From Podarcis pityusensis (lineage: Eukaryota), in NCBI GenBank assembly GCA_964106645.2, contig OZ067038.1: 64,000 nt of DNA; one strand, written 5' to 3'. How positions within the stretch are numbered: position 1 is the first letter of the stretch; every line of letters starts with the position of its first letter. The position numbers and the translations under genes are program-made. The notes under the pieces are model-generated. The model did not search any database, was not told the DNA's origin, and was given only the letters and a program-made list of their open reading frames with translations. Of the stretch, positions 11,101 through 60,760 are shown one piece after another.

Positions 11101-13419
11101 GATAACCGGCTGGCTTAGTGCCACAGAGCGGCAATCCTCACAGCTGCAGAGCTTTTGAGCAACCTGCCTCCTGGCTCTTTACTGAGCAAACTCTTGGTCG
11201 GCTGTTTTGCTGCCAACACGCTGGGTGGGTTTGTTGATTTTAAGAGTCCAGGTTTCATTTTCTCCTTGTATGCAGGTGGAAAGGTGGGTGGAGCAATGAT
11301 AGCAGGTGGGAGGAACTGGCTGTCCCGAGTGCAGGCCTGGAAGATTGTGATTGGGGGTGGAGAATAGAACAAGTCATTTAAGGAGGACATGGAATGAACA
11401 GCAACAAAAAAGCAGAGGGAGATACTTAACTGGCAAAGCCAGTCTGTTGGCCAGTCATGTGATTAACATGGCTACGATCAGGGAGTGTACAGCAAGGACA
11501 CACAAGGAGTCTCAGGATTTGAAGGTGGCTGCCTGAATCTCAAAGAGGGAAGTCCATAAAGGTAATTATTTCCCCTGTGCTTTTCCATTTTGTAGGATGC
11601 TGCTTGTGAATAAGCTAAAATGACTGTGAAATTGCTCTCTCTTCTGCCTGTGCCATCTGTGCTCTTGGCTTTCTGCCTTGCCACAAGGAGTGAGCAGGAA
11701 AGGACAGCAGCTTTACAAGGTGAGACGAAAAGAAAAAGTTGTCCTGGTGTTGGTCTGTGTCTTTTATGAATATATGTAGGCTTGTGGTGCTTAGCAATTA
11801 AGGCAGTCTGACCCACTGTTTTTTCTTCCCTGTGCCCTTCTTGCTTGACCTGATTAGGCCTCCTGCCTTTGCAGTCACTTGTGCTTCAACCACTAAGCTC
11901 TCTTCTGTGTTTGGATCTCTCTTTTTGGAAGAGACACACTTTATTTATGAGACAATATGAGTGTTTTGAGGGAAGATTTGAAACTTCTTACATGGCAGGC
12001 CTATTTCCATTATTGTTTCTGTTTGGCACAGTGGGCTTTCCTAGGCCTTGCTTCCCAATTTGAGATTATTTTTCCATTGTTGTTTTATGGTCAGTGAGAT
12101 TTGTGTGCGTACGTTTGTATTTAACACTTGCTATCTGATCATAGGGGTGTCCTATGTTTTCCATTTGTTCTTGAGACCTCATTGAATTCCATTTTCCCAT
12201 GACACACATTGCCAGGTTCCTGTAGGCTTCACATCAGCTCACTGATGCTTGATATGGCTGGCTTCTGTCCTGTGAGGGCTTTTCAGTAGTCAACATTTGT
12301 CTATCCATCATTCTCTTTGCCTTCTGCTTAACATTTGCTGTAGGGGTGCATGGAGCTTTAGGAGAGAATGAATAGTGCATACACTGTTAATCTGACCTAT
12401 ACAATCCAGTCTTACTCTGGCCTCTGCCCATGCTGGCCCTGCAGCCAGTGGCAAAGCATACAGGAACTTGGGAGAAAAAAATGGGCTATTCTTCTCTGGG
12501 AACAGAGGATGCTGCCTAGTCAGTTGCATTCTAAGGGGTGGCTTAGTACAGCAACATAGTCATCCTATTGGCTGATCAAATCCTAAGTTTATTTGCTGAC
12601 CAGCTATATGGTGTTTATTTGTTTTCTGTTTTTCATTTGCATTACTGTTGGCTGCCTTGGACATATGTAGAAGGAAGTGGAATACAGTTTTTTAAAAAGA
12701 AATTAATTAGTAGTGGCCAACTTGTAGGGATCTTCAAAATATGTGAGTGTGCTACTCTATATTGCATTACAGTACCTGTGCAAACCTGTGTGTGTTAGGC
12801 TACTAGTGGCTTTCTCTCTAGTCTTCTAATCTCAGGAGTAGGTGTCATTGCAGTGCTGAAGAGACAGGCAAGAATATACATTTGATTTTGCCTTAGTCGG
12901 GCCTATAAATCCTCAGCTTCTAGTCCAGAAGTGCCATAGACTCATTCTGCCTTTGCCACTGTGATGTTTGTGCCACAGCTGGATACTATGGGGTTAAATT
13001 TAGTATGTGGTGGGGCAATGAAACACTAGGTTAGCCATACATGGAACTGACACATTTATTCCCATTATTAGTGCTTTCAAATGACCATATAAATAAATAG
13101 TTGAACTGTCGTTCTAGGAAGTGAGCAGATTTATCTCTGGAGTGTCGCAGATATCTGCATACAAGATTTTTACTTCCTTATGATTTATTTTTGATGTGGC
13201 TCACAAAATGATCAGGCAGTGCACGATGAAGAAACTCTACTGTGCTCCTTCTAGATTTAACTTGCTATCCCTATGTATTGGTAAAATAGCTTTGTTAGTA
13301 CAGAGATGAAGTACTCTTTCATAACACATCCTACTACAAAGGTAAGGATGCTAACATTTCCATTTCCATCGAGTGACAATGGGGACACAACCTGCATCTC
13401 TTAAGTCGTATGCTTAAAT

Positions 13420-19758: not shown

Positions 19759-20904
19759 TATAGTTGCATATTTATGCCTACTGTTACACCAGCAGTGGTA
19801 GTTAAGAACCATTGGGTGCCTCCAGAATAGTCCATCAACAGGCAACCAGAGCCCTTGAAGTTGGGTTTGAATCTCTGGTTGCTTATAGCATACAAACAAC
19901 ACATAAAAAGGTCTCAAATACATAAGTTACTCTTAATTGAGAACTGCATGAGAAAATTATGTTCCATGTGCTACATCACTTGGCAAGTAGAGCGCAATGT
20001 GGAATAAATTCCCATTTAAATTTATCTGCTAACATGAGGGAGACTATTTTAGAACTGGTACATAGATGGTACTTAGGTCATTTAACTATCATATGTGATG
20101 GCCATGTGTGCAAAATGAATTTTACTTGGAAGTCACCCCACACCAAAATAGTATTGATCAGTCAGACATGATTTATGCTTTGTACTTCTGGACATTTCTG
20201 AAAATGATTATTATTCTTACAAAGACTTATCAACTTTTGTTTATAGCAGCTAAACTGGATATGTCTGAGCACTGGAAAAGATACAGAACCTCTATCTATT
20301 TCTCAATGGTATCAAATAAGGTGGAGGTTCACTGTCATGGACAAACAAGTGCATCCATTTCATGTACTTCATTGTTCCAGTTCCAGTTCATATCAAATAC
20401 TAACAAGTATACAGACATGCAACTTTTTGCTCAGCAAAATGTACTGTGTTGTACAGGTTTTTTTGAAGGTTGATTGCTTTTCCTTTGAACTTGTAGCTCT
20501 GAAGCACTTATTATAATTATAGTATCTTTTAAAAAAAAGTTTCCAGGTGTGCAAATGACCAGTGAATACCACCAATGCTTTTTTTTATACATTAGCAGTA
20601 TTTGGTTGGCTAGGTTTCCCCCCCTGTTCTTTCCTTTTTCTATAGTGCTTGCTTCAGTGCATTGCCTCTGGTGCATTGTGTGTGGTGTGTGTGTTATGAG
20701 GAGGGTTGTTGAATGTGATCATTGTGTTAATGCCCTTATTATCAATTTGTTCTCTGTTCATTATAAATAAGGAATCTATGGCATAGATAGAGTTATAGTT
20801 AGAATCACATAGTTAGCTGATCTTGTTATCAGGATGATAAATATTTATCTCTCTTCTCTATAGTAAATTCACTTTAAACAGTCTTTCAGGAGACATCACA
20901 TGGT

Positions 20905-20917
20905 ATGCATATTAAAA
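20905..20917 (+). CDS. SIGIRR: Candidate SIGIRR start exon (exon 20864-20917; coding MHIK + 1 nt)
   Basis: Pyrimidine-rich acceptor ctcttctctatag ending 20863 and consensus donor AAA|GTAAGT at 20918. ATG 20905 leaves phase 1, in frame with the exon at 21071. In-frame TAA upstream at 20875. Would give a 529-aa two-Ig protein. Confidence 0.5.
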
Positions 20918-21070
20918 GTAAGTTCAGCCAGGGGGGCAGTGTCTATGACCTGGTTGGGCATGAATGACTTTGTTGCTGTTGGAGTTGCGTATTCTGTGCT
21001 TGCTGTAGAAATGTAGGTTGGATTAGGCATCACAGAAGTAGTTGCAATTTAACTGCTTTGCTTTATTTAG

Positions 21071-21418
21071 AATTCTTTTCGCTGACGGTTTCATCTAATT
21101 TATCGTGTGTGGACCCAGATCACTTCTATGATCACACCATTTGGACCCAGCAAGAACAGGTTAATCATTTGTTCTGCCCTTTGGATAACCAGAGCCTCCA
21201 GCTTCTTCAGTCTACCTCAAACTTTAGCATCCAGTGGAGCAAAAACTGTCATCTGCTTAACTTCACCGCGTTAAGCCACCTGCACAGCACACTGCAGAAC
21301 ACAACAACATACCTCACCTTTGAGCACGCAAATGCCAGCGATGCAGGCAACTATACCTGCACGCTCTACTTGAACGATCAGAGAAACAGCTCCTTCACTG
21401 TCCGGCTGGTCATGGCAG
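21071..21418 (+). CDS. SIGIRR: SIGIRR extra Ig-like domain exon (IL-1R family D2 type)
   Basis: 348-nt open phase 1-1 exon, tttag|...G|GTGAGT. Encodes C...LFCP...IQWSKNC...DAGNYTC...FTVRLVMA with 8 N-glycosylation sequons. Confidence 0.85.
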
Positions 21419-24400
21419 GTGAGTGAAAGAAGTGGGAATTTGCAAACATGACTTTGGATCCCTAACCTAACACTGACGTCTCCTCTTGGGCCCATCCCAG
21501 GAGAAGCAGTACTGCTACTGTTTCAAGATGGGCCACTTGTCTGCCTAAGTCTGGATCCTATGTTGCTCATTAGACACATAGTAGCTGTGAAGTATCTAAC
21601 TATGTAGGGCATGATTTTGTCCGTTTTCTCCTAAACATAAGGTACTGATCATACTCAAATAAGTTATGGCATTAGATAAGCCCTGGGGATGTGAGCCAAT
21701 TTATCAAGTGCTATGATCCAAATTATGCATTGTCAACCAGAAGTTGGCGGGTTGATGTCTGTGACTGTATGTGTGGCTGTTGCTGAAGAGGGCTTCCCTT
21801 TACCTGGGAGAAAAAGGCAGACACGGAGCTCTTTCTGAGCCCTCTCTGCATTTTATGTTATATCTAAGATGACATATAAAGGTAAAGGGACCCCTGACTG
21901 TTTGGTCCAGTCACGGATGACTCTGAGGTTTCGGCGCTCATCTCGCTTTACTGGCTGATAGAACTGTGTAAACAGATAAACCTGGCGAAGGCTTCACTGT
22001 GGTGGAGACATAGTTTAGGAGAGAGAGAAAAGATTTAATGTTTCTAAAGCTGTGATAACAAGTGATAGTACCTAAAATGTGGTGAGAGGTACCTGAAGCT
22101 ACCAAGATAAGCTCACTCCGTCCCCCATTTGCTAGTTGCATTGTCAGAGTTGAAATGGGGAAAGACAGGTTTAAAAAAATATATATGTTGAGATTTTAAA
22201 AATTAGCAGACTTGTTGGCACAGATAAGTGTGTTTTTGTCTCTGCTTAATCTTTTATAGTGCACTTAAACTAGGATGGATCACCATTTTGGAGCACTTCA
22301 TTATGCTATTAGAAACATAAATTAGCTAAAGATGGTCAGAGGGAGATCATACATCATTTGAGCTGAAATCCTGCACACACATCCTGAGACCTGGAAGTCA
22401 GGCTTGCTAGGCACTGTAGGTCTTATTTCTGAGAAGATTTGTATAGGATTGTACTCTTCAATTTTTTTTATTAATTAAGATAAGGATGGTAGTTGCTGGT
22501 TTCTCAGGAAGTTCTCCTGAATTGGCTAAGGACTGGATATGGGCTCTAAAAAGAATATTTTTTGTATTGTTCTCCCTTTTAAATAAAGGTAAAGTTTGGA
22601 AATGAGTCCAATACACACAGAGGTACCTACAGAAGGGAGAGCCTTTACATTTTAAAAAATGATGACCATGATGGCCTAGTTCTCCTTTTCAGAATTTAAG
22701 GGAATGTAAGGGAAAGGAAAATTAGGGACAAGTACCTGTGACATATTCTAGTTTTTAATGCAATGTGACATTTGCACCTTAAACACCCTATTTTCCGCAA
22801 TAGGATTCAGAAAGTTCTTCATTAAAAAACGCACGCTCACATATGCTGAAAATGTGTCACATATGCTGAAAATATTTAGCATGGATGAATGAGTTGACAG
22901 TATGGAAGACAGAGGGGGAAGAACAGCACTGTGCTGGACTCTGAACAGGCAGTGAGAATAATTAAAGTACTGGCACTAGGACTTCAAAAGTTAATAATTA
23001 ATACCATATCTCATATTCAGCACTTCTGTGATGTGCATACCCCTTTATCCTGGGCATTTCTCTATTATGGGACATGACATGCTTTCCAGATAACCTGAAC
23101 ATTCTGTCTTTCCCACTATAGTCCTTACTGAATTTCTCATTGTTTTCTCAAGTCAAATCAGAACTGCAGAACCAGCCTTGAGAGAGAGGTTATACTCAGC
23201 AATTTGTCTAGTTAAGTCGGCGAACCCACTGTGCAAGGGAGATTGTGCTTAGGTGCAGGGTCACAGGGACAAGAGTAGCTTGACTTTCTTTGTTATGTTA
23301 GCCAGACCTAAATAGCCAATATAAGATTTGCAGTATTCAGTCTGGAAGTTCAGTGCTCTCATTGAAAAGCTCTCTTACGATGTACTGTTATTGTTTCCCC
23401 AACAGATATTTGCAGTGTCCTTCCTCGTTTCCTTTACCCCTCCAGCAATCTGACTTTGCAACGTGATTTGGGAAGCCAGTTTACACTGAACTGCACTGTG
23501 CAGCTGCCCTACACGAAAAGCTGTGATTTTGGCCTCCACTGGATGAAAGATGACCAGTTGCTAGACAACGAGACCTTTGCTGCTTCTACTCATTGGTAAG
23601 AAGGCTTTTATGTATAATGGAAAATAAAGCTAAATTGACTGTATAAACTAGAAACAAATTAAAATAGTGTCTCCCAGACTCTGAAGATAATGGTGGATCT
23701 TTAAGGGCTTATGTATACTATTAGCCTTATAGGTTTGTAGAATAGGGGCAGTAGTGTAATATATATACTTCAATGGGAGGAAATATCTTTGCTATAGTAG
23801 GGTGAGATTGAGTGAGAGTGGGAGATTGTGTTTCTGTTAAAAAGCAAATTGTACACTTAAGCCCTGGAGAAGAGCTTAAGAGAATGCTCTATGTATCAGT
23901 CTTCAATGGGGAGGCAGAGGGAGAGGGAGAGGGAGAGGGAGAGGAAGAAGACCCTTTCAGATGTTTGTGGCTTCAGAACAAATCTGGTTTCATGAACACC
24001 CCCTTTATTTTAGTGTTCCCACTGCAGGGGACTTGTGTTGTACGTTATCAGTGGGGTCATAGATATGTTCTACTAGGTTACTGTGAACTCATGTAATATT
24101 TTGTACATTACTCAATAATGGCATGGAGGCTGTAGCTGGGAGAAGAAAAATTGACATTTCACTAGTAAGAAAAAAATGCACTTTAAGCAATAGGACATTG
24201 CTACTATAGTTCCACAAAATAAGTACTTTTATGTAAGACAATGGGATCCCATACAACAACTAAGCAACCACAATTAATCCTTTGCTTTAAAAGAACAAGG
24301 AAAAAGATGATTTTGAAAGTCCCCAAATTTCTACTAGTTTTTTTTAAAATATAATTTTTATTAACAAACCAATCAAATCACATTAATTCCAAATTACACA

Positions 24401-26060
24401 GCCAAATTTTTAAATTTTTGTTGGGGCTACCCATGCTTTGAGCTCAGAAAGGGATCCAAACATCTCTCTTGCTGCTGCTTTAATGTTCACAGTTCTGTCC
24501 AAACAGTATTCACAGTTCTGTTCAATCTTCTCTTTATTATTTTCCTCATCTTCTTGTTGTTGTCATATATTCCTTTCTTTGTGACCTCTGATAGTCTCCA
24601 CAAGCGGGTTGAAAACAAACGTTGTTATATCCTGTGTGGATTTTCATTCCTCCAAGAGCCATATTCAAACAGACAGACGCCATTTCCGCACTTCCGTACA
24701 AAACATTCTTAAAGTCTGTCCATTAATCCTCGCAGGCCTGTCAGTCTCTTAGGGGGTTCTGCCAGGTCAAACTCACAGTCCGATATAATAACAAGCCATG
24801 GTCTCCTCCCCCTCGATCATAAATCCTGTAGCCAGGCCTGCCCTAACAAGTCTATTTTTATAACTGCATCACAAAGACCTTTCATTCCTTCCCAGACATT
24901 CCACAAACCATGTCTTTGATTAGTAATTTATTTCCACACAGTTCTTAATCATCCTGCTTGTAATCAGTAATTGCAACGATTCTTCTTGGGGGGGGGAGGT
25001 TATTAGGTACTCACATAAGATAAAAAAAGAAAAGTCCCCCCCCTTTCAGTCCCGTTTCGACATACCGACCCTTTGATGTATCTTCTTCTTGATATATTGT
25101 TAATCGCTCGTCGCTCCACTTCACAGAGGTCACTTCAATTAGCAGTCTTTACTCCCGATCTTCACTCGAAATATGTGCATTTGCTTCTCTCTAATTGTTT
25201 ATTATGAGCTCCTGCAACCAGGCAGTGTTCCCCATTCCCTTGGGGTAACAAGGGAGGCTGCATACTTCCATATCAGCTTCTTAATTACCTCGTGTGAGAC
25301 GGAGAGATGTTATTGTCGGCCATCTTCCAATGCGCCCCTAGCGGCCCCCCAAATGTCTACTAGTTTTTGTGGAAGAAAAGGTTTTCAAAGGCCAACGTGA
25401 TAAAATAGTGACAGTATTTCCAGATCATAGATACTCAAATGGACACTCTTGTTACCAACTCACAGTTCATTCCTTGTCCAAATTTAATGTTTGGTATAAT
25501 CCAAGATTGATAGGGTGGAGACCTCTGAGTTTCCTTCCGGTCCGGTTCTGACTGAAATTTCCTAGTGTTTGTTTTCAATCAGTGCTAACGTAAATCATCT
25601 TCTATTTGCACCCCAGGTTCAATGACAATAAATCAGAGATATTCATCTCCAGCACTTTGGATATGAATGTAACAACAGATGAAAATTATGGAGCATTTGC
25701 CTGCTGGGTTAGAAACAGTACAGCAGTTTTCACACTGCAAAAATCAGGTAGCATTTCTTTGTACTTCATACCATGTGCATTTGGTGTGGGCCGGTACTCT
25801 ATTTGAAGGTTGTTATCTTTATTAAGTTGTTCAAAAAAGATTCTGCTACTCACTAACTGTATTCCATAGTAGAATTCCCATGAGTATTTCTGAAATGAGA
25901 GTTGGAGATACTTTTTTTTTTTTTAAGAGTTGACAGACTACTCTGAAAACACACTTATGGCATTCAATCCAAATGTAAATTTCCCTTTCAGAAGTGACCT
26001 CTGAAAACCAATAGATAAGAATATGGCTGTGTACAGCATTGATTGGCTGATGCCTTTGAA

Positions 26061-26571: not shown

Positions 26572-29500
26572 AACTACATCCTTAGGTCCAATGTACAGGA
26601 TTCAGTATGGTCTATTGAGGATGTGGGTAGCATGGAATCTGGCCAGAGTTTGACCCACAGTGAGTTTATAGAGGTGTGACAGCTTCACTATACATTCAGT
26701 TTATAATTCAGTCCACATTTTTCACTTTGTAGTGCCACTGTTCAGATCACTCTTGGCATGTGTGCAAAGGCAAATGTGTTATGGGGGGGAAGAAACATAG
26801 TTTTGAACTAAGATGGCTTCAAAATTCTGAAGTATTGTATGACCCTCTGAGAATTTATGAACTGGGTATCTCAGCTTGGCTTTCCTTCTTTAAGGAAGAA
26901 GCAAGACTTAATTTTCTATATAGAAACTAACTGTTCTCATTTAAAAAATAGAGTAATTTACTTTAGCCCATGCATGGCCATCTGATAGACTGAAGTCTAG
27001 CTGGGGTGATAAGAGTATTTGCTTTTATGCAGTATCTAGATGCCTTCCTTTTCTTTTGAATAAGTTTCTCCTGTTTAACTTGGAATTCAAGAATCTCGGC
27101 TGAGCCTACCTGATCCTCTTCTTAGACTTTAGAAGATGTTTTTGCTCTAACTGGTAGTAGGGTTGCTAAAAAGGGCTTTGAACCAGACTTACCATGTCTC
27201 TAGAGGAGTTTAATATAAAGACAGCCTTTAGTGCCCTCAGTATTGCTCCATGCTGGCTTTAGGGCTCAGTTTAAAAGAGCAATTTTATGATGGCGTCATC
27301 AGTGAATCTGATGGCAGAAAATTGCCACATGATGGCACCAGCAGACAATAGAAACTTTTCTGAGGTTTTCAATCAGTCACAGCCTCAAATGGTTCTGCAC
27401 ACCAAAGCAAACGTGCTATTAGGCTGCCCCCAAGCAACTCAGCTGTTTTGGCATGCTTGAACACTTTCAAATTCCTCCATCTGGAAGTTTCCATAGGCTG
27501 ATGGAGCAATTCTGAGATTAGAGCCTCAGTGTATTTTAAAGCAACATTCAGCAAATGGCTCAGTTAACAGTGTATTCCAGAGTGTTTTACAAAAAGTCTA
27601 AATGAACATGCCCGCGCACTTGCAGGAAGAAATTGAATTGGTACTGGAGAATGTGAATAATTTAGTTCATGCACATCTTTACTCTGAAAACCTTTGATTT
27701 ACTTCTGCATGTGCATCTTGTGAAAGGAGATACTTGCAAAATCTGGAGGATGATCTAACAATGTGGTACCAGAATAAATCTGTCTTTTAGCTTCTGCTCA
27801 TCTCTTCCTCATCATGGTTGCACATTCTGATAGTCAGAACAGTCATCAAGATACTAAAAATTGTTCAAGAATGACATAACCCCTCATTTTCTTTATAATT
27901 TGGTATATATGGAGACCATAGAACCCAACTCTTCTCTTCCTCTTTTCTCTACCATGCTATCAATTACAAGGCTGTTTTCTAATTTAATGCTATTTAAAAT
28001 ATGTCTTTCTATTACAGCAGAGACTGCTGGGCACTTGGGCGCTGTGCTAGCTGCACTTGTCACTGTGGCACTGCTGTTACTAATGGCTGTGATGTATGTG
28101 AAGTGCCGTCTGAATGTGCTCCTCTGGTACAGAAACCGTCATGGAGAGGTGGAGATCAATGGTAAATATTGGGCTGGAGAGTTGGCCGTCACTTTTCCCC
28201 TTGTGAGATTCGAGTTTCACTGACAGTCCAACCCAAAGTGTGAACTTCTACAAGAATTATCCTCTCAGTGTTATAGCTAGTCAGCACAGGTTTTTTAAAA
28301 AAAAAAAAAAATTATAATAAATTTCTCCCCTTGGTACTTTTCCACAGATGGAAAGCTGTATGATGCCTATGTGTCTTATTCTAACTCAACGGATGATAGA
28401 AAGTTTGTCAACTTCATAGTGAAGCCACAGCTGGAGAATCGTCACGGCTACAAGATTTTCCTGGATGATAAAGACATCCTGCCCAATTCAGGTATAGAAC
28501 CTTGTCCAACACCTCATTTAATATGTACCTGGGCACTCAGACTTGCTGTTGAGTTCAGGCTGCAAATAACTTATCTGAAATGGATTAGTTGGCTAAATGA
28601 AGAGAAACCTTCAGTTTAATTTGCCCATTTGGCATCCTGTGTTTAATATGATAGCTTTATTAAGTGTTAAAATATCCAATTGAAATCGGTACACACACTA
28701 AGTCTGAATATCAGGTTAACTCTTGCATCCATTTTCAAACAAGAGGAGGAGAATGCAAAAAAACACTATTTCTATTAGACACTGAGACAGCAGGGTGAAA
28801 GTTGGTATGCAACTTCAGGGCAACATTCTGTATTTCAAGTACAGCTTAATCCATGTCCCTATTTCCAAGGTAGATTGGAAAGATGTAAAACATAGTGCAG
28901 TGCTATATCTGACTGAGATATTAGAATACAGGCAGGTGTGTACATTCAGGACATCATTGTGCATTTCATATATGATCCCAGCTTGACATCTGTATCCTTT
29001 TTCAGAGTGAAGAAAAGGGCCACAAACATTGCAATGCAGTATCTGAAATGAAGCCTGTTGAACGCTGCACTTTGCTACTTAATAGATGCAAAAGTATGGC
29101 TCTGAAAAATTACTTTGTCCTCTGGCACACTATTTTGTGCATCTGAAGCAACCTAAAATAGCTTTAATTCTAAACACCAATAATGGCAAAGCTGTGCAAA
29201 GTAGGAACTGAATATTTTATAGACAGGCTCTCTGTTGTACGAAGAAAAATGTATTCTCCTTAACCACCCAGTTGTTCACAGTTAGGTTCCATTTGCATAT
29301 TAAGTAGGATGTATTCACAGTCTGCCCAGTATATGCTCAGCACAACTGGTGGGCTTTCTACACCTGTTCAAAGTCTGTGGCATGATGCATTGCTTAACTT
29401 GCATGACCTTGCAGATATGCATTTCATTGTGCTGGCCCGCTGCCTCTCCCTGTGCCTCCACGTTTCCAGGCTGTTATTGCATATGTTTGACAATGTGTTG

Positions 29501-32500
29501 TTTCTTTATTTTGGGCACAACTTGTTTAATCTTCCTCCAAAGAGCATGAAGTGTAGTTCCTATCCAGGCAGTTTACAGGGCCACCACTGTTCTGGCTTCA
29601 GCAATATCACTGTAATCAGGTGCCTTCAGACCATTTGTTCTTATCTTCAACTGTTTTGTTTAATAAAACCTCTATAAAAAGTATGCAGCATCCCTTTGCA
29701 TGGGGATGCAAAACAAGCTGTGTACAAAATGCAGCTCCTCCATATTCTGTAATGCTGTCCACAGTGGACAGTTCTGGTTAAACAAGAATACACCACAAAA
29801 CAGCATTTGTGCTCTTTGTGGTGTGTCTAATAATAAAAAAATGCAATGTTTGAGTATACTCTTCATTTATTTATTTTTTAATGTCTTGAGTGTTCCACCA
29901 GAGGCACTCACATCCAGAACCAATGGTGCTGTCTGAAGGACAGGGAAGTTCTAAACAGGCTGGTTAGTTTTTATTCCATTGCCCGGGGCTTCTCCTTTCT
30001 GTAGAGCAGAGCGGATATGCATTTGGATGCTAGGGTACTTCTTTCTTGTACAGGTGAAGGATGAATGCTGAAACAACAATGGATTGGTTCTGGACCTTCT
30101 CAGAAGAGATTTAGTTTTTCTTCTCTCTTTCAGAACCTTCTGCAGATCTGATTATGAATGTTAGCCGGTGCCGCCGCCTCATTGTGGTTCTCTCTAATGC
30201 ATATCTGGAACAGGAATGGTGCAACAATAATTTCAGGTAATTAGAGTCAGCGATAGAGACAAGTTCTCTGATCCTCCTTTCATTTTTGGAGGATCAGGAA
30301 TGACTCAAGTGTGCACTCCCTCCTATTGCCCACCTTGTTTAATAGAAAGTTGACCAAGTTGACCAAACAGGCAAATAGTATGTGCAATTCTGATTTGGAG
30401 GGATCACTAAAATCACAGTTTGCTTATTTGGTTGTCCTGGTAAACTATGGCTTGTCAAACCAGTCAAGTGTTCCAATAAGTTGTACTCATAAGAGGAAGA
30501 GGGAAGGTAGAAGGGAGTAGGAAGGCAGGAGGGAGTATGTTCCTGGCTCTCCTATCTATGGTTAGAAGGGCCTCTGAATTTATCCAATTTCTGTATACAC
30601 CTCCAATCACAACACCCAGAATCTCTCTCATATATCTGGATATGAAGCACGGCAGTTTAGTGTTAATGCCTCTGAAACCAGTTCCTGAAGTTTTCATTGA
30701 ACTGAAACTAGTGGTGCTTAGAATTAAAATTGTGGGTGACTAGATTGGGTTCAAAGCTTTGTCAATAGTTTGGTTGTGGATTTGCTTAGGACTCTAACCA
30801 ATTGTCTGGTTTTGCAGGGAAGGTCTTTGGAGGCTGCTGGAACTATCCCGGAGGCCAATCTTCATTGTCTTTGAGAGCCAGTACCGAGAAATAGCACATC
30901 CAGCCATAAACTTGCTGAAGCAGCAGAAGAGCACAGTGACCCTTCTGATGTGGCGCGCTGGGTCCATGGTAAGTTGTGGGCTGCAAGGCCATAACTTCAT
31001 CACTGTGGTTATGTTTCTCAGTGGCAAGGCAGTACTTGAAGCTATTCAAGAAGCATAGAAGTGTGGAGTAGCTTCTCTTCCAAGAAGGGTTGAGATCCAG
31101 TCCTCCATTACTTGACCTTGCTGTGATGTATACCAGAGTAATAACTGTTACCTGCTTTTCTTGGCACTAAAGAGTAGCACCTTCATGAAAGTAGGCTGAA
31201 TATATTTTTGTCTGTCCGTTATTTTGATATCTCCTGTTATTTACTTTTTATTTTAGCTATTTACCTGTTGACTAGGAAATCATCAGCTCCAGAGATTTGC
31301 CAAATGATACCTTTTTAGATGAACATGGCTTGACTGCTCCATGACTCATGCGTGGAGGCCATGAGCAGTGTTGTAAGCATTGCAGAAAACATAGATAAGT
31401 TATATTTTAACTCCAACATTAAAGAAGCAAACAGAGCCACAGGGAGGCACCAGAACCTGAGAAATAAGAATTGGAAACATATACTTGCTTCACCCAGAGT
31501 ACTCTCAGTGCAAAGAGAAATGAAAAGAGAGGAGGAAGCTACAGACTGGGGAAGGAAAAAAGCACAAACCCTTCCCTAAAATGAGCATTTGCAGGGGAGC
31601 ATTCTAGCAGGATAGAGACTTCTGGTTTACAGTTATTGCTGTTTCTTTATCTGTGCTAAATGAACAATAGCATGCTTGTGACTCACAATACTCCTTGCAG
31701 TTGCACATCAGGATATTTAGTTATTTTATTATGCTTTTCACCCACCCTTCACCTCACGGTCCCAGGGCAGGTTACAACAATTAGAAAAACTACTGACATG
31801 ACACATGTGTGTGTATTTTTAAAGAACTGGACCCATCGTTTTTTGTAAGCTGGTATAATGCAAAACTTGTAGCTCATATAAATATTTAAATACATAAGTA
31901 GGATGCACACACAGGTAAACAAATAACTGCAAGCATGCTTGCAGTAGACCTTAGGTTTCCAGAACTTAGGGAGTGCAAGGAATGGAGGGGAGGGGACAAC
32001 AGCACACAGTGCAAAGACACCCCATCAAGCACCTCCCACTCTTGGGGGACAGGAAGCACTGCAGTAGAGTTCATTTGAAGGTGGTCCTGTGGACAGATGT
32101 GCACAAAAATCCACATGGAAAAATCAGAGCTGTGCAACTCACTTGTGCAATTAACACTCTGCTGTGCACACAACCTATGCCTCAAGACATAAGAAAGGGG
32201 CTTTTTGATTTTACTTACAATGTAAAGAATCCTAAGCAGCTTTGTTAAACAGGCCTTTTAGACACAGCAGTCAAGGAACTACCTACTCCCCTCCCCAGCT
32301 AATAAGAAGTTACGACAGCCAAAATATTTCAAAGCAGCTTTAACAGTGCCTGGAAAATGCCATTAGGTGCAAGGATACTGCTTCCTTCTGGCAGTGAGTG
32401 GATCAAAGCCACCATATGTCCGCTATTTTTTTGTTTACTCCTATCTCTAAGACAAAATGGGAACAGCACATTAACATTTTTAATAAGACTGTTGCTGTAC

Positions 32501-35500: not shown

Positions 35501-37303
35501 AAATTCTTGTAACCTCTATAGGTCACTTTCTCCTCTAGGGCTATGGCTTACTGCAGGCTTCCTCAAACTCAGCCCTCCAGATGTTTTTGGCCTACAACTC
35601 CCATGATCCCTAGCTAGCAGTGGTCAGGGATCATGGGAATTGTAGTCTCAAAACACCTGGAGGGCCAAGTTTGAGGAAACTTGGCTTACTGCATGCAGTT
35701 GTAGCTTGCAGCTATGGTTTACTGTGATGTACAGACTGGGCCACTAAGGTGAGATGAAGTTAGGAAATAGCAAGCTTGGGAAAGCTATCTGTGCGAGGCA
35801 TTGAAGCATTGCAGTCTGTTTCTGAGTTTTTGCTGGATACCAGCCACATGTTCTCTTGCCTTTTATCCATGAGGACAAAGCCAAAAGCCTTACTTTAAAA
35901 AAAAGAAGGGGAAAAAAAGAATTCACTCAATTTAAAATTGCACTGAAATCCTAGGTTAATGGAAAGGCGAAATCTGTTGCTTTATCTGGTCACGAAAGCC
36001 TTCCATCAGAAGTAATGCCACTTAATACCTCTTAGATTTTGCAGTGTGTTTCATCTCAAAGATGAAACAAAGCTGAATGGGAAAACTGTTGGGGGAGCTG
36101 TAGATCCCTCTGTTGTAGTGAACATTTATCTCCCTCTGTTCAATCCTTTGGGAGCCAGACAGGGTGCCTGTGCTTCATAGACGAGGAGCTCCTGTGAGAA
36201 CGCTGCCCTCAAGGCAGGGCTGCTGGGACTTGCCTACAGATATATCGCACAAGGGTTTGTGTGTAACTGATGAGCATGTGACAAGATGCTGCCTCTTTGC
36301 TGCTTCTAGGCGCCTTCATCTGATTTTTGGAAGGAACTGTGCCTCGCCCTGCCACGAAAAGTGTCCTATCAAGGCCTTAGGGGAGACCCCCAGACCAGTT
36401 TCCAGGAAGACAAGGACCCTATGCTGATCCTCAACAGCAATTACTTGGATTTCCGGGGGGATTCGCACCCTGAAGGAGACTCTGGTAACAGCACTGTTTA
36501 ATCTTCACTCTGTCACCATAGCATGCCAACAGGAGAACACACAGTTGCTCTTGATCCTGCTCTGTGGTTTTTTGTTTTTTTGAGTGTTAGTCCACAGTTA
36601 GCCAGAAAGATTCTCAAGTGAGGCTCACAATTAAGTTTGAAAGAAAAAACCCCATTAAAAAATCACTTGATAGAAGAACACTGCACTTGCTAAAATTAGC
36701 AAAAGTATAGCCCAGCAGCTTTATTAATCAGTCAGCCAGGTGCCTTTCTACACACTGCCATGAGCTAACTGTGTGCTTCCTGCCTGTATTATTACAGCTA
36801 TTTTAGTATGGTATGCCAAAACCCTATGTACACTTACTTTAACGTAAGTTCCATTGAACTCAATCCTTTAGAGTGGATATGTGTAGGATCAGGCCTCACT
36901 TTTGATTACAAAAGCTAAGGCTAGTCAGATGGTAACCGCCCCCGCCCCCCCGAATTAAAGATGCTTTGGAATATGTGATCAAATTGTGCTATGTATTCTC
37001 ATCTTAGTTTCACCTCTAGGAAATAGGTTTCTTCTTTATTTCAGAATTATCAAAATCTGTTCAGCCAAAGGTGACAGTGGAGACCAATGGAAGTGAAGCC
37101 TCTGCACCCACTTTCAGATTCCTTAAAATTTATTTTCTCCACTTTAAGCCTGTGTAGTGTAGTCAGATCACAAGCAGTAGTATTTATTTAAGGCCTTTAT
37201 ATACCATCTGACTTGGCAGAATGTGTCTACTTTGGTTGATCACCAGGCTTGGTCACCATTGTATGCTGTGTCTGTGGCTTCCAAATGGCATAACAGGTCT
37301 TCC

Positions 37304-38413: not shown

Positions 38414-39620
38414 CTGCTTGAGAGAAAGTGATGCACATTAAATGTATTTCATGAGGCTTACAAAGGTGTTACCGGTTTCTCTTCCCAGCTCCCCTCCTGA
38501 GGTCTTTGAAATGCTGCCTGTTAGTGCTAAGGGGAAGAGCAGCTTCTCTCAGACCCTGGGCATTGGCAAAAGGCAGGACTGAAGCCTCCTCCTCGATTCC
38601 CTAGGTGTTGAAATATTCAGGCCCCTTACTCTTGTCTGACATGTCAAGGCATGCTCTAAAATAAAACATTTAAATTAAGTTTAAAACTGCCAACTGACTC
38701 CCAAGCTGCATGAGATACAGGAGGTCTATAATTAGATCTCCTGACATTTCTGCTTTTAGTTAAAAGTAGCCAGAGGCTCCAGCTTTGATTAGAGCAGTGA
38801 CCCTGAGCCTCAGACCTGAGGAAAAAATTTTTTGAACTCTTTTCACTGTGCCATTACCCCAATCTGTACTGTCTCCTAGTTATAGATCTCCTGCATCTCA
38901 CGCAACTTGATACTTAAATTGGTTTAATAGTTCTTCCTTCTCTCCGGCTAGCCTTAGCAACTAGTTCTTTGAGGAAGGATAGCAATCTCACTGAAGTACT
39001 ATTCGCAGAAATGTTGGTGGGAAGCAATGATACTTAAACTGGTGTTTAAACGAGCTTGAACTGTATATATGTCCTGCTTGTGAATACAGTGGTACCTCGG
39101 GTTAAGTACTTAATTCGTTCCGGAGGTCCGTTCTTAACTTGAAACTGTTCTTAACCTGAAGCACCACTTTAGCTAATGGGGCCTCCTGCTGCTGCCGCGC
39201 CACCGGAGCACGATTTCTGTTCTCATCCTGAAGCAATGTTCTTAACCCGAGGTAATATTTCTGGGTTAGCGGAGTCTGTAACCTGAAGCGTCTGTAACCC
39301 GAGGTACCACTGTACTTACAGAAAGTATAGTGGCACTGGTCATTTTAAAGCACTGCAACTTGTCTCATTCTGCCTTGCCATCCCTTCCTCTCTGCTAACT
39401 GCTACCTTCTCCTTCCCATCCTACAGGTGGCAGGGGGTCCATTTTCAAAGGCGCACCGCCTCCTCCCATGAGTGGCCCTGATGGTCCTCCACTTGGTGCT
39501 TTGGAAGAAATACAGCTTGGGGAAAACCAAAGGAGTGAGATTGACATCTCTGATTTGGGATCTCGGAACTATGGAGCAAGGACAGATTTCTACTGCCTGG
39601 TGACAGAGGATGATATCTAA
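21071..39620 (+). CDS. SIGIRR: SIGIRR / IL-1R8 (TIR8), multi-exon gene; join(21071-21418, 23406-23595, 25617-25747, 28021-28161, 28348-28491, 30134-30236, 30818-30968, 36310-36484, 39427-39620); probable additional start exon 20864-20917
   Basis: Nine GT-AG exons with consistent phases. From ATG 21412 they give 411 aa: Ig domain, TM ...[27 protein letters not shown]...[14 protein letters not shown]-tail [17 protein letters not shown]. This closely matches recalled human SIGIRR (410 aa). Adjacent to PKP3 as in human. Confidence 0.97.
21878..21958 (-). mobile_element. Sauria SINE 3' fragment
   Basis: aaaggtaaagggacccctgac...gcgctcatctcgcttta matches the other copies. Confidence 0.75.
23406..23595 (+). 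CDS. SIGIRR: SIGIRR exon, membrane-proximal Ig domain N-half
   Basis: aacag|...TG|GTAAG; [13 protein letters not shown]...[11 protein letters not shown]...HWMKD; homologous to human GVCDRAPDFLSPS...LNCT...WLKD. Confidence 0.95.
24338..25346 (-). mobile_element. ~1-kb non-LTR retroposed element with L1-like 5' end
   Basis: 17-bp TSD ccccaaat(t/g)tctactag at 24321-24337 and 25347-25363; minus-strand AATAAA plus A-tail at the left end; 5' end GGGGCGCATTGGAAGATGGCCGAC. Confidence 0.8.
25617..25747 (+). CDS. SIGIRR: SIGIRR exon, Ig domain C-half
   Basis: cccag|...G|GTAGC; [43 protein letters not shown]. Confidence 0.95.
26064..26113. repeat. (CT)n(CA)n compound microsatellite
   Basis: Directly visible. 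Confidence 0.95.
26530..26567. repeat. (GT)n microsatellite
   Basis: Directly visible. Confidence 0.95.
28021..28161 (+). CDS. SIGIRR: SIGIRR transmembrane exon (alternative NAGNAG start at 28018)
   Basis: [46 protein letters not shown]; donor G|GTAAAT. Confidence 0.96.
28348..28491 (+). CDS. SIGIRR: SIGIRR TIR exon (box 1/box 2)
   Basis: [48 protein letters not shown]; cacag|...G|GTATAG. Confidence 0.97.
30134..30236 (+). CDS. SIGIRR: SIGIRR TIR exon
   Basis: [35 protein letters not shown]; ttcag|...AG|GTAAT. Confidence 0.97.
30818..30968 (+). CDS. SIGIRR: SIGIRR TIR exon
   Basis: [50 protein letters not shown]; tgcag|...ATG|GTAAGT. Confidence 0.97.
33218..34057. mobile_element. Tc1/mariner-type non-autonomous element, family B (long form)
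   Basis: TA|CAGTGGTGC...GCACCACTG|TA; repeated GCAAGACGAA subterminal motifs; internal tandem duplication. Confidence 0.9.
35554..35683. mobile_element. 130-bp palindromic hAT MITE
   Basis: Perfect 8-bp TSD gcttactg; the element is almost entirely an inverted repeat. Confidence 0.9.
36310..36484 (+). CDS. SIGIRR: SIGIRR TIR box 3 / tail exon
   Basis: [41 protein letters not shown]...PEGDS; tctag|...G|GTAAC. Confidence 0.97.
37305..37381. repeat. (CTTT)n(CCTT)n microsatellite
   Basis: Directly visible. Confidence 0.95.
38380..38411. repeat. (CA)n microsatellite
   Basis: Directly visible. Confidence 0.95.
39087..39312. mobile_element. Tc1/mariner MITE family A
   Basis: TA|CAGTGGTACCTCGGG...CCCGAGGTACCACTG|TA; inverted relative to the 17058 copy. 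Confidence 0.9.
39427..39620 (+). CDS. SIGIRR: SIGIRR last coding exon
   Basis: GGRGSIFKG...[28 protein letters not shown], stop TAA at 39618-39620. Confidence 0.97.
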
Positions 39621-49400: not shown

Positions 49401-52400
49401 TTATTCTTCAGGGGTAAGGGGGAAAGAGAACAGGAAGCTTTCTTCTCAACTGTGAATTGGGGAGAGCTGGTTATGACAAATGACAGAACTGGCACTGATA
49501 TTTGGCTATTCCTTCTCCTTCAAAGTACACTTCCAAAACTATTTAAATATTTTCACTGGCCTACATTAGGGATTCTTAACCAAAGGTCCATGGATGGGCT
49601 TCAGGAAGTCTGTGAACAAAGGGAGGGGGGGAACCTTCCATTGCAACAAACGTTTGTGTGCATGTGTGTGTGTTTATGTGCATTTTTCTGGGAAGGAAGT
49701 CTATAGCTTTCATCAAATCCTCAAAAGGGTCTGTGGGCCAAAACAGGTTAAGAACTATTGACCTATATACCTACAACAAGTATTGGGACACTGCAAACAG
49801 AGAAGTCCGTCTGGCCTTCCCCTTCATCTACTCCTAGTGCTGTACGATCTATTGGTTCTTAGTCTTTTCTGTCCTAGCCATGTTTGGATTCAAGCAGGTA
49901 AGGGAGGCCTTGTCATCTCTTTTCAAATTTTGCACAAGCCACCTATGAATGCCTTTCTTCTCATCATCTGTGACATGGAGGGTGAATTCTCACTGCAGTG
50001 CCTGTTCAGGTCTAAGGAAGGTTAGGCAGGCACATCCTGCAAGGGAAGTTCCTTCACAGGCACCTTCTCTTCATGTTTGCAATCTTAAAAAAACAACCCT
50101 CTAAGTGATAGACTGAGAACACATTGTGAGCCGCATTCACCCTGCTTAATTTCACACCATTTTATCCCAGTGTACCCAACAAGACTCTTGGTGGGATGTT
50201 TCAAGCTGTTAACCTTACCCTCCGGTCTCCTGCTGTGATGTTCTGAAGAGCCCCAGAGGCTGCCTCCGTGGTGTGCTTGTTTAGCTCACATCTCTGTAGC
50301 AGCCTGTTGTACACTCCTATAATTTGAGGGTTCCACAGCCACTCCATCCCTTTGGGATCCTTAGAGACCTCTGTGAAAGTCACAATGTCTGAGTTCATGT
50401 GGAGCTTGGGAGGGAAAGAAAGAGAATGTTCAATGACCATTCTATGGGGGTCTAGAGAACCGTTTTCTACCATATCATCCCCTTCATACCTTGCCCAGAC
50501 CTCAGCTCATGCACTGTTTCCATCATGGCGGTCATCCATTTCTATGGACAAAGCTTCTCACGCCTTAAATCCACTTCAATCTCTTTTGGGATCTTACTCG
50601 CTTCTTAATTGCTTCTCATGTGTTCACTTCACTGTATCATTAATTCCCAGCATTCAATGTGAAAGTACTGGGAGGAGCTTACACCTCCACTGATAACGCT
50701 CTGGATCTCCTTGGGGATGTCACCCTCACACCCTGAAAAGCAACTTCTATTCTAGTGCTTAGATCAAGCAACAGGCATGATGAGGATCAAGGCAACAACC
50801 ACTGATCTGAAAGTTCTTCCCACTCATCTCTGAAATTGGGGGTTTCATTGTAGTTACTCAGAACCAAGCAAAATGTCTTCACATTTTCAGGGATACTTTA
50901 ACAAACTCTTACTTCATATTCTGAGGATGGGGGATGAACGCCAACAATAAAAACACATGTTTGGGCAGAGCCCTGGCACAAATTAAGCTATGCAGACTTC
51001 AGATGCACAGACCCCTTCATAGGCTCACTTCACCATCTCTTAACATAATAACAATAACAATTTATTATTTATACCCCGCCCATCTGGCTGGGTTTCCTCA
51101 GCCACTCTGAGCAGCTCCCAACCGAATATTAAAAAGACAATGCAGCAATTCCTTACCTTATGCAACATTTGCTGCCAGGCCCTTCTTTCTATCCCCCATA
51201 ATAACACCATTTGCCCTCTCACCTCTCGAGCTCTCCTGCCCTGTGGGCTGAAGCATCCAACCAGCTCGCTAGTCATGGTTGGCCCCTCGCCCCTCCTTTG
51301 GCCTTCCAGTCTCTGGAGTGCAGAAGGAGGCATCTCATCATAGAGACGGTAGGAGAGGTTGCGCAGTACACAGACGGCATTCTCTACACTCTGTAGGGAC
51401 AACAAAAGCGGGGTGTGCTCTTAAACGAACCATTTACAGCAAATTTTCCAATGCAAAGTATTTCTTTTTCTTTCTTTTGGCAAGCCCTTAAGGAATTATG
51501 TTTTTAAGTGGTTGCTGTGGATTGTATTATAAGATGCTGTTCTGTGTAGATTTCAGTATTTTATGTATTTTTGTTTGTGTTTGATTCTTCTCGTCAGCTG
51601 CCTCAGGCAAAAATTTGGAGAAGCCCCAAATGTAAAATATTATGCATACACACACACATAATTTATATTTTGCCTTTCCAGTTTTTTACTGGAAGCAGCT
51701 TACAAGAAGACTCCTCCCTGGCTTTGGAGTCAGGATAAGGGATATGGGCTACATCTGTGCTTGGAGACATCTGCACTCCACTTCTGCCAAGAATGAGAAA
51801 GGCTAGGAATGGAGATTCCCAGGCAGCTCTGACCCAAGGAGCAACCAAGCATATTTGATTGTATTGAACCCGTGCAGCCCAGGCACAGAAAAATGCATTA
51901 TTTCACGGTCTACAGAAAACTTAGATTATTTTACTTAGATGTATAGAAACAGTCAAATTCAAGTCTTTTTAAACCCACAAATCACATTTTAGCTGACTTG
52001 TTTGCTGCAGATACCCTGAATTTTAATGGAAGAATTCAATATACTCTTATCTGACCACTTACAAGCTAATACGACTTTTATTCTTTCTTGTATTTTATGT
52101 TGCCCTTCCTCCAAGGTGCTCATTATAGCATACATGGTCTTCTGTGATGTAGGTTAGCCAAGTATCAGTGCTTGGCTGAAGATCATCCTGCGAGTTTCAT
52201 TGCTAAGGGCAGATCTGAACCAAGGACATTCGAGCCCTAGTCTGATGCTCTGTTCACTACACTACATGAATAAGGGTTGCTTTACACTTTCCATTTTTGG
52301 GTGTACACCAAAAATTCCATATGTCTGTCTAAACTGAAAAGTGTAAAAAACACATTTCTCTCTCTCTCACACACACACACACGCCTTGTGATTGGCTGTA

Positions 52401-55400: not shown

Positions 55401-57432
55401 CTTGCTATATGTTCCTTTCCTATAAATAGCACATGGCTTGCTATCTGCTGAATGGTTTTACTGGAACTCATCATACTTCATTTGATTTGGGGTTCTATGT
55501 ACAGTGCTACCTCAGGTTACATACACTTCAGGTTACATACACTTCAGGTTACATACGCTTCAGGTTACATACTCCACTAACCCAGAAATAGTACTTTGTT
55601 TCAGGATGCGAACAGAAATCATGCTTTGGCGGCGCGGCAGCAGCAGCAGGCCCCATTAGCTAAAGTGGTACCTCAGGTTAACAACAATTTCAGGTTAAGA
55701 ACGGACCTCCGGAACGAATTAAGTACTTAACCCGAGGTACCACTGTATAGGGTGTTTCCTTGAAGTTGGTCATGACATCTCCAGACAGCTATCCCTTTAA
55801 ACATTAAGAGTAGCTAGGAAGCAGCCTCCCACACTATGCTATTTAAAGTACAGTTGAAGTGAATTGGAAAATCAATGTAAAAAAGCAAATATCAATCAAC
55901 CATGTTCAAAACCTTCTTATAAACCCTGCAAAGCAATTAACCAGTTCCAAAGGGATAAAATAACAAAGCACTGAAAATCCAAGTATCTGCTCTGCAAATT
56001 TTGCAAGAAGCAATTTCAAAAGAATAGCTATATTTGCCACTCAGTTGTATGCTTTTGTTCAATGGGCAAGGTGGCCTCAGGATTCCAATATACAAACACG
56101 AAACTCTTTGGACTGATATCCTGGAATAAGTAAGAAGACATTACTTTCCTACTTATCAAATGAAACTAAGAAAATTTTCTATCTACATTAGTATTGTGAA
56201 AATGATGTACCACATGATGCTGTGGTTGTTTAAATATATAAAATGATGGGTGGGTTTTGTTTTTTTTAAGAGAGTAGATCTATTTGCTCCAGCACATTTT
56301 CAAAGCTCAAATCCACAACTACAGAAATTTCAAAATGAACAAAAATGTACCGTTCAAAAAGGGGGACATATTCTGATCTCCTTGTGGTGGCAGCACTTCC
56401 TTCTATTCATATGGTTTCCAAGGGTATACCTAATTATTTTGGAACGGGTGCTTGAAGTGTTGATTCCTTGTGGCAAATGGATCATTTGAAGGTTCCATCC
56501 CAGTACAAATATCAACATGTGTGTGTGTGTGTAAGATAACTGCTAATTTTAGTGGGGCCGCTATAGATGAAAATATTAGAATGTTGAGCTATTATCTGCT
56601 AACCACGCAAATCAGCCTGAGTCACAGGATGAGACCAAACAGCAGCCCCAGCAACTCCTCCAAGAAATGACAGCAAGAGAAAGATGCAGACAGACGCCAT
56701 GTAGAAACTTGTATGGATCCAAGCCCTGTAAGACTGTCAACATTACTGGGATGCTTTACTACAAAGACAAGAATGGTTGAGTCACACAAACTTGTTGGAG
56801 CAAGACAGCCCTGCAGGCTCTGCCATGTGTCAATCGTGTTCTTCCAGGAACTCATCTAACCTCTTCCCTGTTACAGTTCCTCAAACCTGAGATCTTTCCT
56901 GCAGTACTGACAGGATAATGTTTGACTTGCTCAGCTTTGTCCAGACCAGCTTGCTCTTTTTTCTTTACCTCTACTGGGACGCTCTACATCAACAAACAGA
57001 CCAGATCCTCAGCCAGGCCCAGCACCATCTTTTGGAGGGGAGTGCTGGGCCATCTGCCCTCAGTGCCCCCAGCACAAACCAGCCCCCCAATACCCACCAT
57101 CACTTAGTTCCTTGGGCTGCAACCACTGGGCTCCCTCTTCCCCTAGCTCTGACATGGGCTCATCAGCCACTGCTCCGATTGGGTAAGCTGAATGGCAAAT
57201 GCAACCATGAGCTCCCCCCTTGAATTCACAGGTGAGTAGGGTTACTCTATGCCAACACTGGCAGGAGGACTGTAAAGGGCTGAATCAGAGCAGCCACCAG
57301 GCTCCCAGCACATTAAAGTGCTGCTAAGATAAGGGGCAGGGCAAGAAAAGTGTCAGTGCTGGTGTGCATGGACCCCTGGTTCCACTATGTTAGTAGGATC
57401 AACAGATATTCTGGATACAATTTTCAAGGAAG

Positions 57433-57488
<56 letters not shown>

Positions 57489-58349: not shown

Positions 58350-58394
<45 letters not shown>

Positions 58395-60716: not shown

Positions 60717-60760
<44 letters not shown>

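Follow-up and report, generated by a model that had tools for sequence, protein, structure and literature searches.

The stretch analysed here, 64,000 nucleotides of the Podarcis pityusensis genome (GenBank assembly GCA_964106645.2, contig OZ067038.1; hereafter the window, with positions counted from its first letter), carries on its plus strand the lacertid orthologue of SIGIRR (IL-1R8), the single immunoglobulin (Ig) interleukin-1 (IL-1)-related receptor. The gene is of a two-Ig form, with a signal peptide, a membrane-distal Ig domain (Ig1), a second Ig domain (Ig2), a transmembrane segment, a TIR domain and a tail. The codon of interest is the ATG at 21412–21414, which encodes the penultimate residue of the last strand (strand G) of Ig1 and lies at the position where one-Ig SIGIRR starts in mammals, birds, turtles and amphibians. 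The best explanation overall, which we hold with considerable confidence, is that this methionine of a lost Ig1 domain was reused as the start of the one-Ig protein.

The gene was located by tblastn with the Lacerta agilis protein annotated as single Ig IL-1-related receptor isoform X1 (P0120, 559 amino acids (aa)), which matched ten plus-strand exons at 87–100% identity. The ten exons, all with canonical splice sites, were joined to check frame and length. The full open reading frame (ORF) comprised 559 aa, the frame from the ATG at 21412 comprised 412 aa, and skipping of the Ig1 exon gave 443 aa with the frame kept. An earlier, sequence-only reading of this site had put the one-Ig form at 411 aa and the two-Ig form at about 529 aa; the splice model corrects these to 412 aa and 559 aa, the latter being the length of L. 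agilis isoform X1.

The exon encoding Ig1 occupies 21071–21418 on the plus strand (348 nucleotides (nt)). It is entered through the acceptor tttatttag/ and left through the donor G/gtgagt (a slash marks a splice border throughout), in phase 1 on both sides, and its 115 full codons are free of stops. It scored above the Pfam gathering thresholds for Ig_2 (7.9e-7), I-set and ig, and RNA contigs covered it over 21069–21415. In an AlphaFold2 run on the orthologous Ig1 segment with a 14-sequence alignment, an Ig-type beta sandwich was predicted (mean predicted local distance difference test score 81.8), with Met 21412 as residue 115 of the modelled segment, within the final strand 104–116. A PDB sequence search with Ig1 returned generic Ig matches and weak matches to ST2 and IL1RL2, a strength at which the corresponding IL-1R domain was not assignable.

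Met 21412 is the sole methionine of the Ig1 exon. The sequence GTC ATG GCA G/GTGAGT, with its G at −3 and +4 in Kozak context, was read at 21409–21424 (GTCATGGCAGGTGAGT) exactly as had been claimed, the donor GTGAGT following directly after 21418, the last base of the exon. Splicing of 21418 to 23406 gives M-A-D-I-C-S-V-L-P across the junction. The intron so removed (21419–23405, plus strand, phase 1, GT..AG) is 1987 nt long. RNA was mapped to positions 20400–23700 of the window (3301 letters), and the joint was found in two spliced contigs and in four raw reads from stranded RNA-seq of a close relative.

The remaining exons, all on the plus strand, were placed as follows. The signal-peptide part of exon 1 (MTVKLLSLLPVPSVLLAFCLATRSEQERTAALQ) lies at 11620–11719, where 33/33 residues were identical to P0120 in tblastn, and ends in phase 1 at the donor CAAG/gtgaga. 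The first half of Ig2 is encoded at 23406–23595, in an exon homologous to the mammalian exon encoding GVCDxAPxFLSPS. By tblastn with P0120 and the splice model, the second half of Ig2 was placed at 25617–25747, the transmembrane exon at 28018–28161, the second and third TIR exons at 30134–30236 and 30818–30968, the first part of the C-terminal tail at 36310–36484 and the last coding exon, stop codon included, at 39427–39620. The first TIR exon, at 28348–28491, was matched by tblastn with P0120 and by itself reached a Pfam TIR E value of 0.0028; the whole of the near-identical P0120 reached 5.7e-17 for TIR and 6.1e-11 for TIR_2. The TIR domain is followed by a long C-terminal tail whose end motif is conserved, as read from the last exon of the window and from the wood mouse (Apodemus).

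The main ORF contains two Ig domains, and a single Ig would be present only in the 412-aa frame from Met 21412. The long form starts with MTVKLLSLLPVPSVLLAFCLATRSEQ, by eye a typical hydrophobic leader; the short form would be leaderless, as in mammals. The lizard gene has the layout of the DIGIRR type, with a signal peptide and two Ig domains, plus a transmembrane segment and a TIR domain.

A PKP3-like (plakophilin) gene lies convergent with SIGIRR on the minus strand, at about 51000–62900 of the window, and a minus-strand ORF within it (59768–60319) matched the Pfam Arm repeat (E 3.8e-10). A convergent Arm-repeat gene also adjoins SIGIRR in wood mouse, elephant, two turtles and ostrich, so that the conserved order ANO9–SIGIRR–PKP3 was recovered on its PKP3 side. 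Long (CA)n/(GT)n microsatellites, visible as HTHTHT and CVCVCV in frame translations, were noted at 57380–57480 and 58330–58400, between or inside PKP3 introns.

The Ig1 domain is widespread. A search with the Ig1 exon among 1.8 billion representative sequences retrieved a sturgeon protein of 547 aa that was 53% identical across the exon, and two-Ig proteins named SIGIRR were found in sharks, sturgeons, about 90 teleosts, a newt, the gharial and many squamates. Ig1 could be aligned across these taxa (the teleosts P0131, P0133, P0140 and P0168 included), with invariant Cys, Trp and D-G-N-Y-T-C and a mean column identity of 52%. On this alignment, the lizard Ig1 is to be regarded as homologous to the teleost Ig1 and not as an independent gain, and two Ig domains as the ancestral state.

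The opposite polarity, in which Ig1 is a derived gain, one Ig is ancestral and the shared methionine is an old start absorbed into a longer ORF, could appeal to the single Ig of coelacanth, bichir, gar and many amphibian models. It is scarcely credible against a homologous Ig1 in sharks, sturgeon, teleosts, newt, gharial and squamates, against a turtle Ig1 that is decaying and not nascent, and against caecilian models that keep a strand-G remnant.

The column holding Met 21412 was scored in an alignment of 106 two-Ig proteins. It contained M in all 11 squamates, the gharial, the newt and the Huso sturgeon, V or I in 86 teleosts, and L or I in four sharks. The expectation that this methionine would be conserved in other two-Ig orthologues therefore held for every tetrapod examined and for the sturgeon, and failed for teleosts and sharks. 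At this hydrophobic position of the strand, tetrapods happen to have Met.

One-Ig proteins start at the same methionine. Their first residues are MADLCSVPPE... in birds, MEDLC... or MADLC... in turtles, MAADSC in the axolotl, MAGSAC or MTDAGC in frogs, MAGVCD or MADVCS in placentals, and MADLCSVLPKF... in short squamate isoforms (Python X2, Pseudonaja X2, Paroedura X2, Heteronotia and Lerista). For comparison with the lizard, the mouse N-terminus reads M-A-G-V-C-D-M-A-P-N-F-L-S-P-S. Caecilian models retain a remnant of strand G before the methionine (..NTTFAVGLAMA..; ENTTFAVGLAMAANPC).

At the genomic level, the first coding exon showed ATG, four further nucleotides and GT at all seven loci compared: lizard, gharial, two turtles, ostrich, wood mouse and elephant (Elephas). 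The same junction, ATG plus four nucleotides and then the next exon, was present in the cDNA of a third turtle, mouse and chicken, and this pattern is no product of chance. The exon ends read ATGGCAG/gtaggc in elephant, ATGGCAG/gtaaga in ostrich, ATGATAG/gtaggt in gharial and ATGGAAG/gtaggg in turtles. In the wood mouse, ...gggcc/ATGGCAG/gtaggc is followed by ...ctttctgcag/GTGTCTGTGACATG, with GTGTCTGTGAC directly after ctgcag/. That the mammalian coding sequence has only a few bases ahead of the intron, as the sequence-only reading had stated, was thus borne out, since in both Apodemus and Elephas a phase-1 intron follows after 7 nt counted from the start ATG.

Of six mouse cDNA contigs placed on the locus of the wood mouse, four have the ATG exon as an internal exon and two are unspliced there. 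In the four, the exon begins at an acceptor some 160 nt upstream of the ATG and follows one or the other of two non-coding first exons. This layout equals the lizard order of exon 1, Ig1 exon and Ig2 exon, and an internal exon with only 7 coding nt is the expected look of a decayed coding exon. A clearly different origin of the upstream mammalian sequence was looked for, and none was clear in this internal exon of about 160 nt with its lizard-like architecture.

Turtles display the intermediate state directly. In Chelonia mydas, about 320 nt directly upstream of the start ATG form a clear Ig1 exon with two in-frame stops and an 8-codon deletion. The Ig1 exon of Emydura macquarii carries one stop and a frameshift, and that of the third turtle (transcript contigs L014 and L015) one frameshift. 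These pseudo-exons were detected by tblastn at E values of 1e-24 to 1e-30, the best being 6.5e-30 in Chelonia. The signal-peptide exon is also recognisable, with GTG in place of ATG in all three turtles (L011 1310–1312, L010 3427–3429 and L014 266–268); crocodilians and lizards keep the signal-peptide ATG at this position.

The spliced turtle mRNA (L014/L015) joins the signal exon with its GTG, the Ig1 exon, ..ATCAGGCTGACC ATGGAAG/ATCTGTGC and a 417-aa SIGIRR ORF. The former signal and Ig1 exons have therefore become a 5' leader, and the Ig1-terminal methionine is the start, so that the proposed decay of the Ig exon into 5' untranslated sequence, with its last methionine as start codon, can be seen as it stands in this group. 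A reading frame of 128 codons stands upstream of this start in turtles. Turtles are intermediate between lizard and mammal. As the GTG is common to the three turtles, it suggests that the upstream start was lost first, in the turtle ancestor, as the founding event; the Ig1 lesions, which are unlike among turtles, suggest that decay followed later and separately in each lineage.

The turtle series also bears on the possibility of coincidence, according to which the mammalian first coding exon is new and unrelated to Ig1, and its likeness in ATG GCA G/gt arose by chance or by Kozak-like convergence. This account would accommodate a placental exon 2 that lacks robust similarity to any Ig1 exon beyond the last 7 nt. 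It would have to treat as accidental the equal distance from ATG to donor, the equal intron phase, the same downstream exon and the same first residues (M-A-D/G-V/L-C), all of which recur at the seven genomic loci and in the three cDNA species, across four amniote groups. It also leaves the continuous turtle series from coding Ig1 exon to leader aside, and offers no ready reason for an internal exon with only 7 coding nt. We consider coincidence very improbable. Positional homology of the start codon, together with decay of Ig1 into the leader, is by comparison judged likely; the claim that the single-Ig start is the internal methionine of a lost Ig domain finds its support in position, namely the same ATG, the same donor distance and the same intron phase. 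The three checks that the sequence-only reading had named as able to refute it were run, and none of them did so.

The transcripts of lizards add a further element. In RNA contig X8, from a related species, the Ig1 exon is entered from ..GCTTTACAAG, the signal-peptide exon, with ...GCTTTACA(AG) joined to the Ig1 exon. In contig X1, from a near-identical lacertid, the Ig1 exon is entered from ..GTCCATAAAG, corresponding to window position 11561, so that this contig shows the joints 11561/21071 and 21418/23406. It contains 135 nt ahead of the Ig1 exon, the last 30 nt and the AG matching window positions 11530–11561 exactly. The upstream part of exon 1 was accordingly placed at 11427–11561 (plus strand), with the alternative donor AAAG/gtaatt at 11561/11562, 58 nt upstream of the signal-peptide ATG, which is removed when this donor is used. 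The choice between the exon 1 donors at 11561 and 11719 thus excludes or includes the signal peptide.

In the X1 transcript, the signal-peptide ATG is absent and an in-frame TGA stands nine codons ahead of the 11561/21071 junction. Met 21412 is therefore the only in-frame AUG for the SIGIRR frame, and production of a one-Ig protein from the signal-less lizard mRNA is predicted as possible. Gnomon predictions contain isoforms of 408–412 aa beginning MADLC... in pythons, elapids and geckos. Isoform X2 of Elgaria (P0113) uses the homologous upstream exon as coding sequence (..VSGFEGVCLNLEVQK/APNLSC), where the window is closed by a stop; the shared exon indicates that the donor is old within squamates.

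Isoform X4 of Pogona vitticeps (P0434, 442 aa) is a two-Ig model whose first exon is yet another alternative and whose sequence stops early within the TIR domain (..WRAGSMVNGGLKDAFV). It adds to the signs that the isoforms of squamate SIGIRR vary heavily at both the 5' and the 3' end.

Within the intron between Ig1 and Ig2, an element of about 80 nt at 21877–21958 (..GGTAAAGGGACCCCTGAC..GGTCCAGTC..CGGCGCTCATCTCGCTTTACTGGC..) drew RNA coverage numbering thousands of reads, on both strands and in each of the four runs, and many of its reads continued into dissimilar sequence. In this it resembles a piece of an abundant squamate short interspersed nuclear element (SINE) and is best called SINE-like; in a comparison with Rfam, no family was matched.

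The lizard transcripts allow a second account of how the start codon came into use. From one gene, the tetrapod ancestor may have made both a secreted-type two-Ig form, encoded by mRNA with the signal peptide, and a leaderless one-Ig form, begun at this methionine on signal-less mRNA, and mammals, birds, turtles and frogs would then have lost the long form. The donor at 11561, the age of that donor as judged from Elgaria, the short Gnomon isoforms and the fact that at least three independent amniote losses all ended at the same methionine speak for it. The 476-nt leader with five upstream AUGs would favour poor translation or nonsense-mediated decay, the equivalent Elgaria transcript is modelled as a leaderless two-Ig protein and not as a one-Ig protein, and the founding lesion in turtles looks like loss of the signal ATG (GTG in all three), which fits a forced fallback equally well. 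This account is given somewhat less than an even chance. The narrower proposition that a one-Ig isoform was there beforehand and that lizards translate it is likewise tentative, the balance being tipped slightly against it. Loss of the long isoform refines the explanation by a reused Ig1 methionine and does not contradict it.

Under reuse of the Ig1 methionine, the course of events would be as follows. Met 21412 is a hydrophobic residue of the last Ig1 beta-strand, encoded 7 nt before a phase-1 donor. When a tetrapod lineage stopped making Ig1, translation would have fallen back on this methionine, as would have happened in mammals, birds, turtles, frogs and caecilians, with at least three independent losses within amniotes. 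In its simplest form, loss of the signal-peptide ATG would lead to fallback on the methionine 7 nt before the Ig1/Ig2 intron, and then to decay of the Ig1 exon. The rest of the Ig1 exon would become a non-coding leader and decay, its 3' end (ATG NNN G/gt) and its splicing to the Ig2 exon being kept. The product would start four residues before the first Ig2 cysteine and lack a signal peptide; a start at the Ig1-terminal methionine would thus account for the leaderless N-terminus of mammalian SIGIRR. The placental ATG exon would be this Ig1 exon in a fully decayed state.

In the tetrapod ancestor, a signal-less transcript with this methionine as start was presumably already present, as a signal-less transcript is still made in lizards. 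In its widest form, the proposal states that the start in all one-Ig tetrapods is the co-opted strand-G methionine, with at least three amniote losses (mammals, turtles and birds) and further ones in amphibians, each on the same codon and each by way of the pre-existing signal-less transcript. Every loss would then have settled on the same codon because a transcript with this methionine as its first usable AUG already existed. We lean only slightly towards this wider statement.

Several points weigh against the explanation. Many of the one-Ig starts stem from automatic annotation, which takes the first in-frame ATG. The methionine is not universal, and its lack in teleosts and sharks marks it as one of several acceptable hydrophobic residues and not as a conserved initiation signal. 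The signal-less leader, at least 476 nt long, has five AUGs upstream of Met 21412, and the reading frames of all five close before 21412. Decayed Ig codons, which the sequence-only reading had proposed to look for upstream of the mammalian and avian ATG, did not emerge as a robust remnant, by alignment or profile, in wood mouse, mouse, elephant, chicken or ostrich. With 14 Ig1 queries, tblastn against the Apodemus, Elephas and ostrich loci and chicken cDNA returned noise and cross-matches to the genes' own Ig2 exon, and an nhmmer profile of four Ig1 exon DNAs (lizard, gharial and two turtles) found nothing at E < 0.2 in placentals or birds.

The sole hint of a placental remnant is a position-matched similarity between murids and turtles. 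In local and global alignments compared with shuffles, murid against Emydura reached a z of about 4, murid against the other turtles 0.2–2, and elephant gave nothing. Between the opening 20 nt of murid exon 2 and the opening 27 nt of the turtle Ig1 exon (TCTGACCT-CCAGGACCTC and TCTGTCCTGCCAGGACCTC), 18/19 nt agreed (p about 0.003, uncorrected), a similarity that is not found in elephant and is unproven as a putative Ig1 remnant. The mammals sampled were placentals, none of them intermediate, and the mammalian loss is undated. The protein searches brought up no marsupial or monotreme sequence; for platypus SIGIRR, PMC12108812 hints at a distinct Pfam ig match.

In chicken, an in-frame P-N-A-S-D-H-A-M before the start (L003 1203–1223) resembled a lizard segment 25 codons upstream of the methionine. 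It was not found in ostrich, is probably due to chance and was set aside.

Compared with known systems, the lizard gene shares with mammalian SIGIRR (TIR8, IL-1R8) the PKP3 neighbour, the TIR domain, the end of the tail, the exon structure from Ig2 onwards and the ATG 7 nt before a phase-1 intron. The main lizard product differs in its signal peptide and its second, membrane-distal Ig (559 aa in all), and the placental exon that matches the lizard Ig1 exon consists of about 160 untranslated nt in which no Ig codons can be recognised. Turtle SIGIRR has the same methionine, the same ATG NNN G/gt and the same phase as the lizard, but its Ig1 exon is dead, its signal ATG is GTG, and both exons are spliced as leader.

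Teleost DIGIRR has the lizard architecture, from the signal peptide and the two Ig domains to the transmembrane segment and the TIR domain. It carries V or I at the column where the lizard has M, and so lacks a latent start codon at that point. In sharks, too, a two-Ig gene gives one-Ig isoforms (Heterodontus X3, Mustelus X2 and Stegostoma), but in these models the signal-peptide segment runs straight into Ig2 (..SKPD/SRCNLPPKF..) and the column has no methionine. They fit a skipping of the Ig1 exon, which is symmetrical (phase 1-1), and they retain the signal peptide.

Much work has been devoted to SIGIRR/IL-1R8, which restrains IL-1 and Toll-like receptor signalling and serves as an immune checkpoint in natural killer cells. 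To our knowledge, reviews remark on its single Ig and missing signal peptide without explaining them. Two-Ig "SIGIRR" models for reptiles are already in public databases. The double-Ig IL-1R-related molecule (DIGIRR) was described by Gu et al. 2011, as cited in PMC3482685, PMC9020223 and PMC9448908. In the same three papers, SIGIRR is considered to have arisen probably as Ig domains were gradually lost, fish DIGIRR, at the same locus, being a perhaps transitional form. Mammalian SIGIRR is described as lacking a signal peptide (PMC9448908), and fish DIGIRR as an intracellular protein, Golgi or cytoplasmic, that inhibits IL-1 and lipopolysaccharide signalling (PMC3482685, PMC9448908). The published length of pompano trDIGIRR (523 aa) equals that of the Trachinotus ovatus homologue retrieved here (P0168). 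A full-text literature search returned no account of the origin of the one-Ig start codon, of the reason for leaderlessness or of the turtle pseudo-exon. The gene itself is ordinary; the mechanism proposed for its start codon is a new and well-supported reading.

With this mechanism, the idea of gradual loss gains a concrete molecular path with living intermediates, and the single Ig becomes a derived, repeatedly evolved state. The name "single Ig" fits the mammalian state and not the whole family, so that SIGIRR is a misnomer for the proteins of reptiles, crocodilians, newt and fish, and ligand and co-receptor work on the mammalian protein misses a domain kept in most vertebrate lineages. More generally, this would be a case of a buried structural residue turned start codon after the loss of a domain. 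If correct, it would supply a mechanistic reason why IL-1R8, alone in the IL-1R family, enters the membrane without a signal peptide, and reptiles would be predicted to make both two-Ig and one-Ig IL-1R8.

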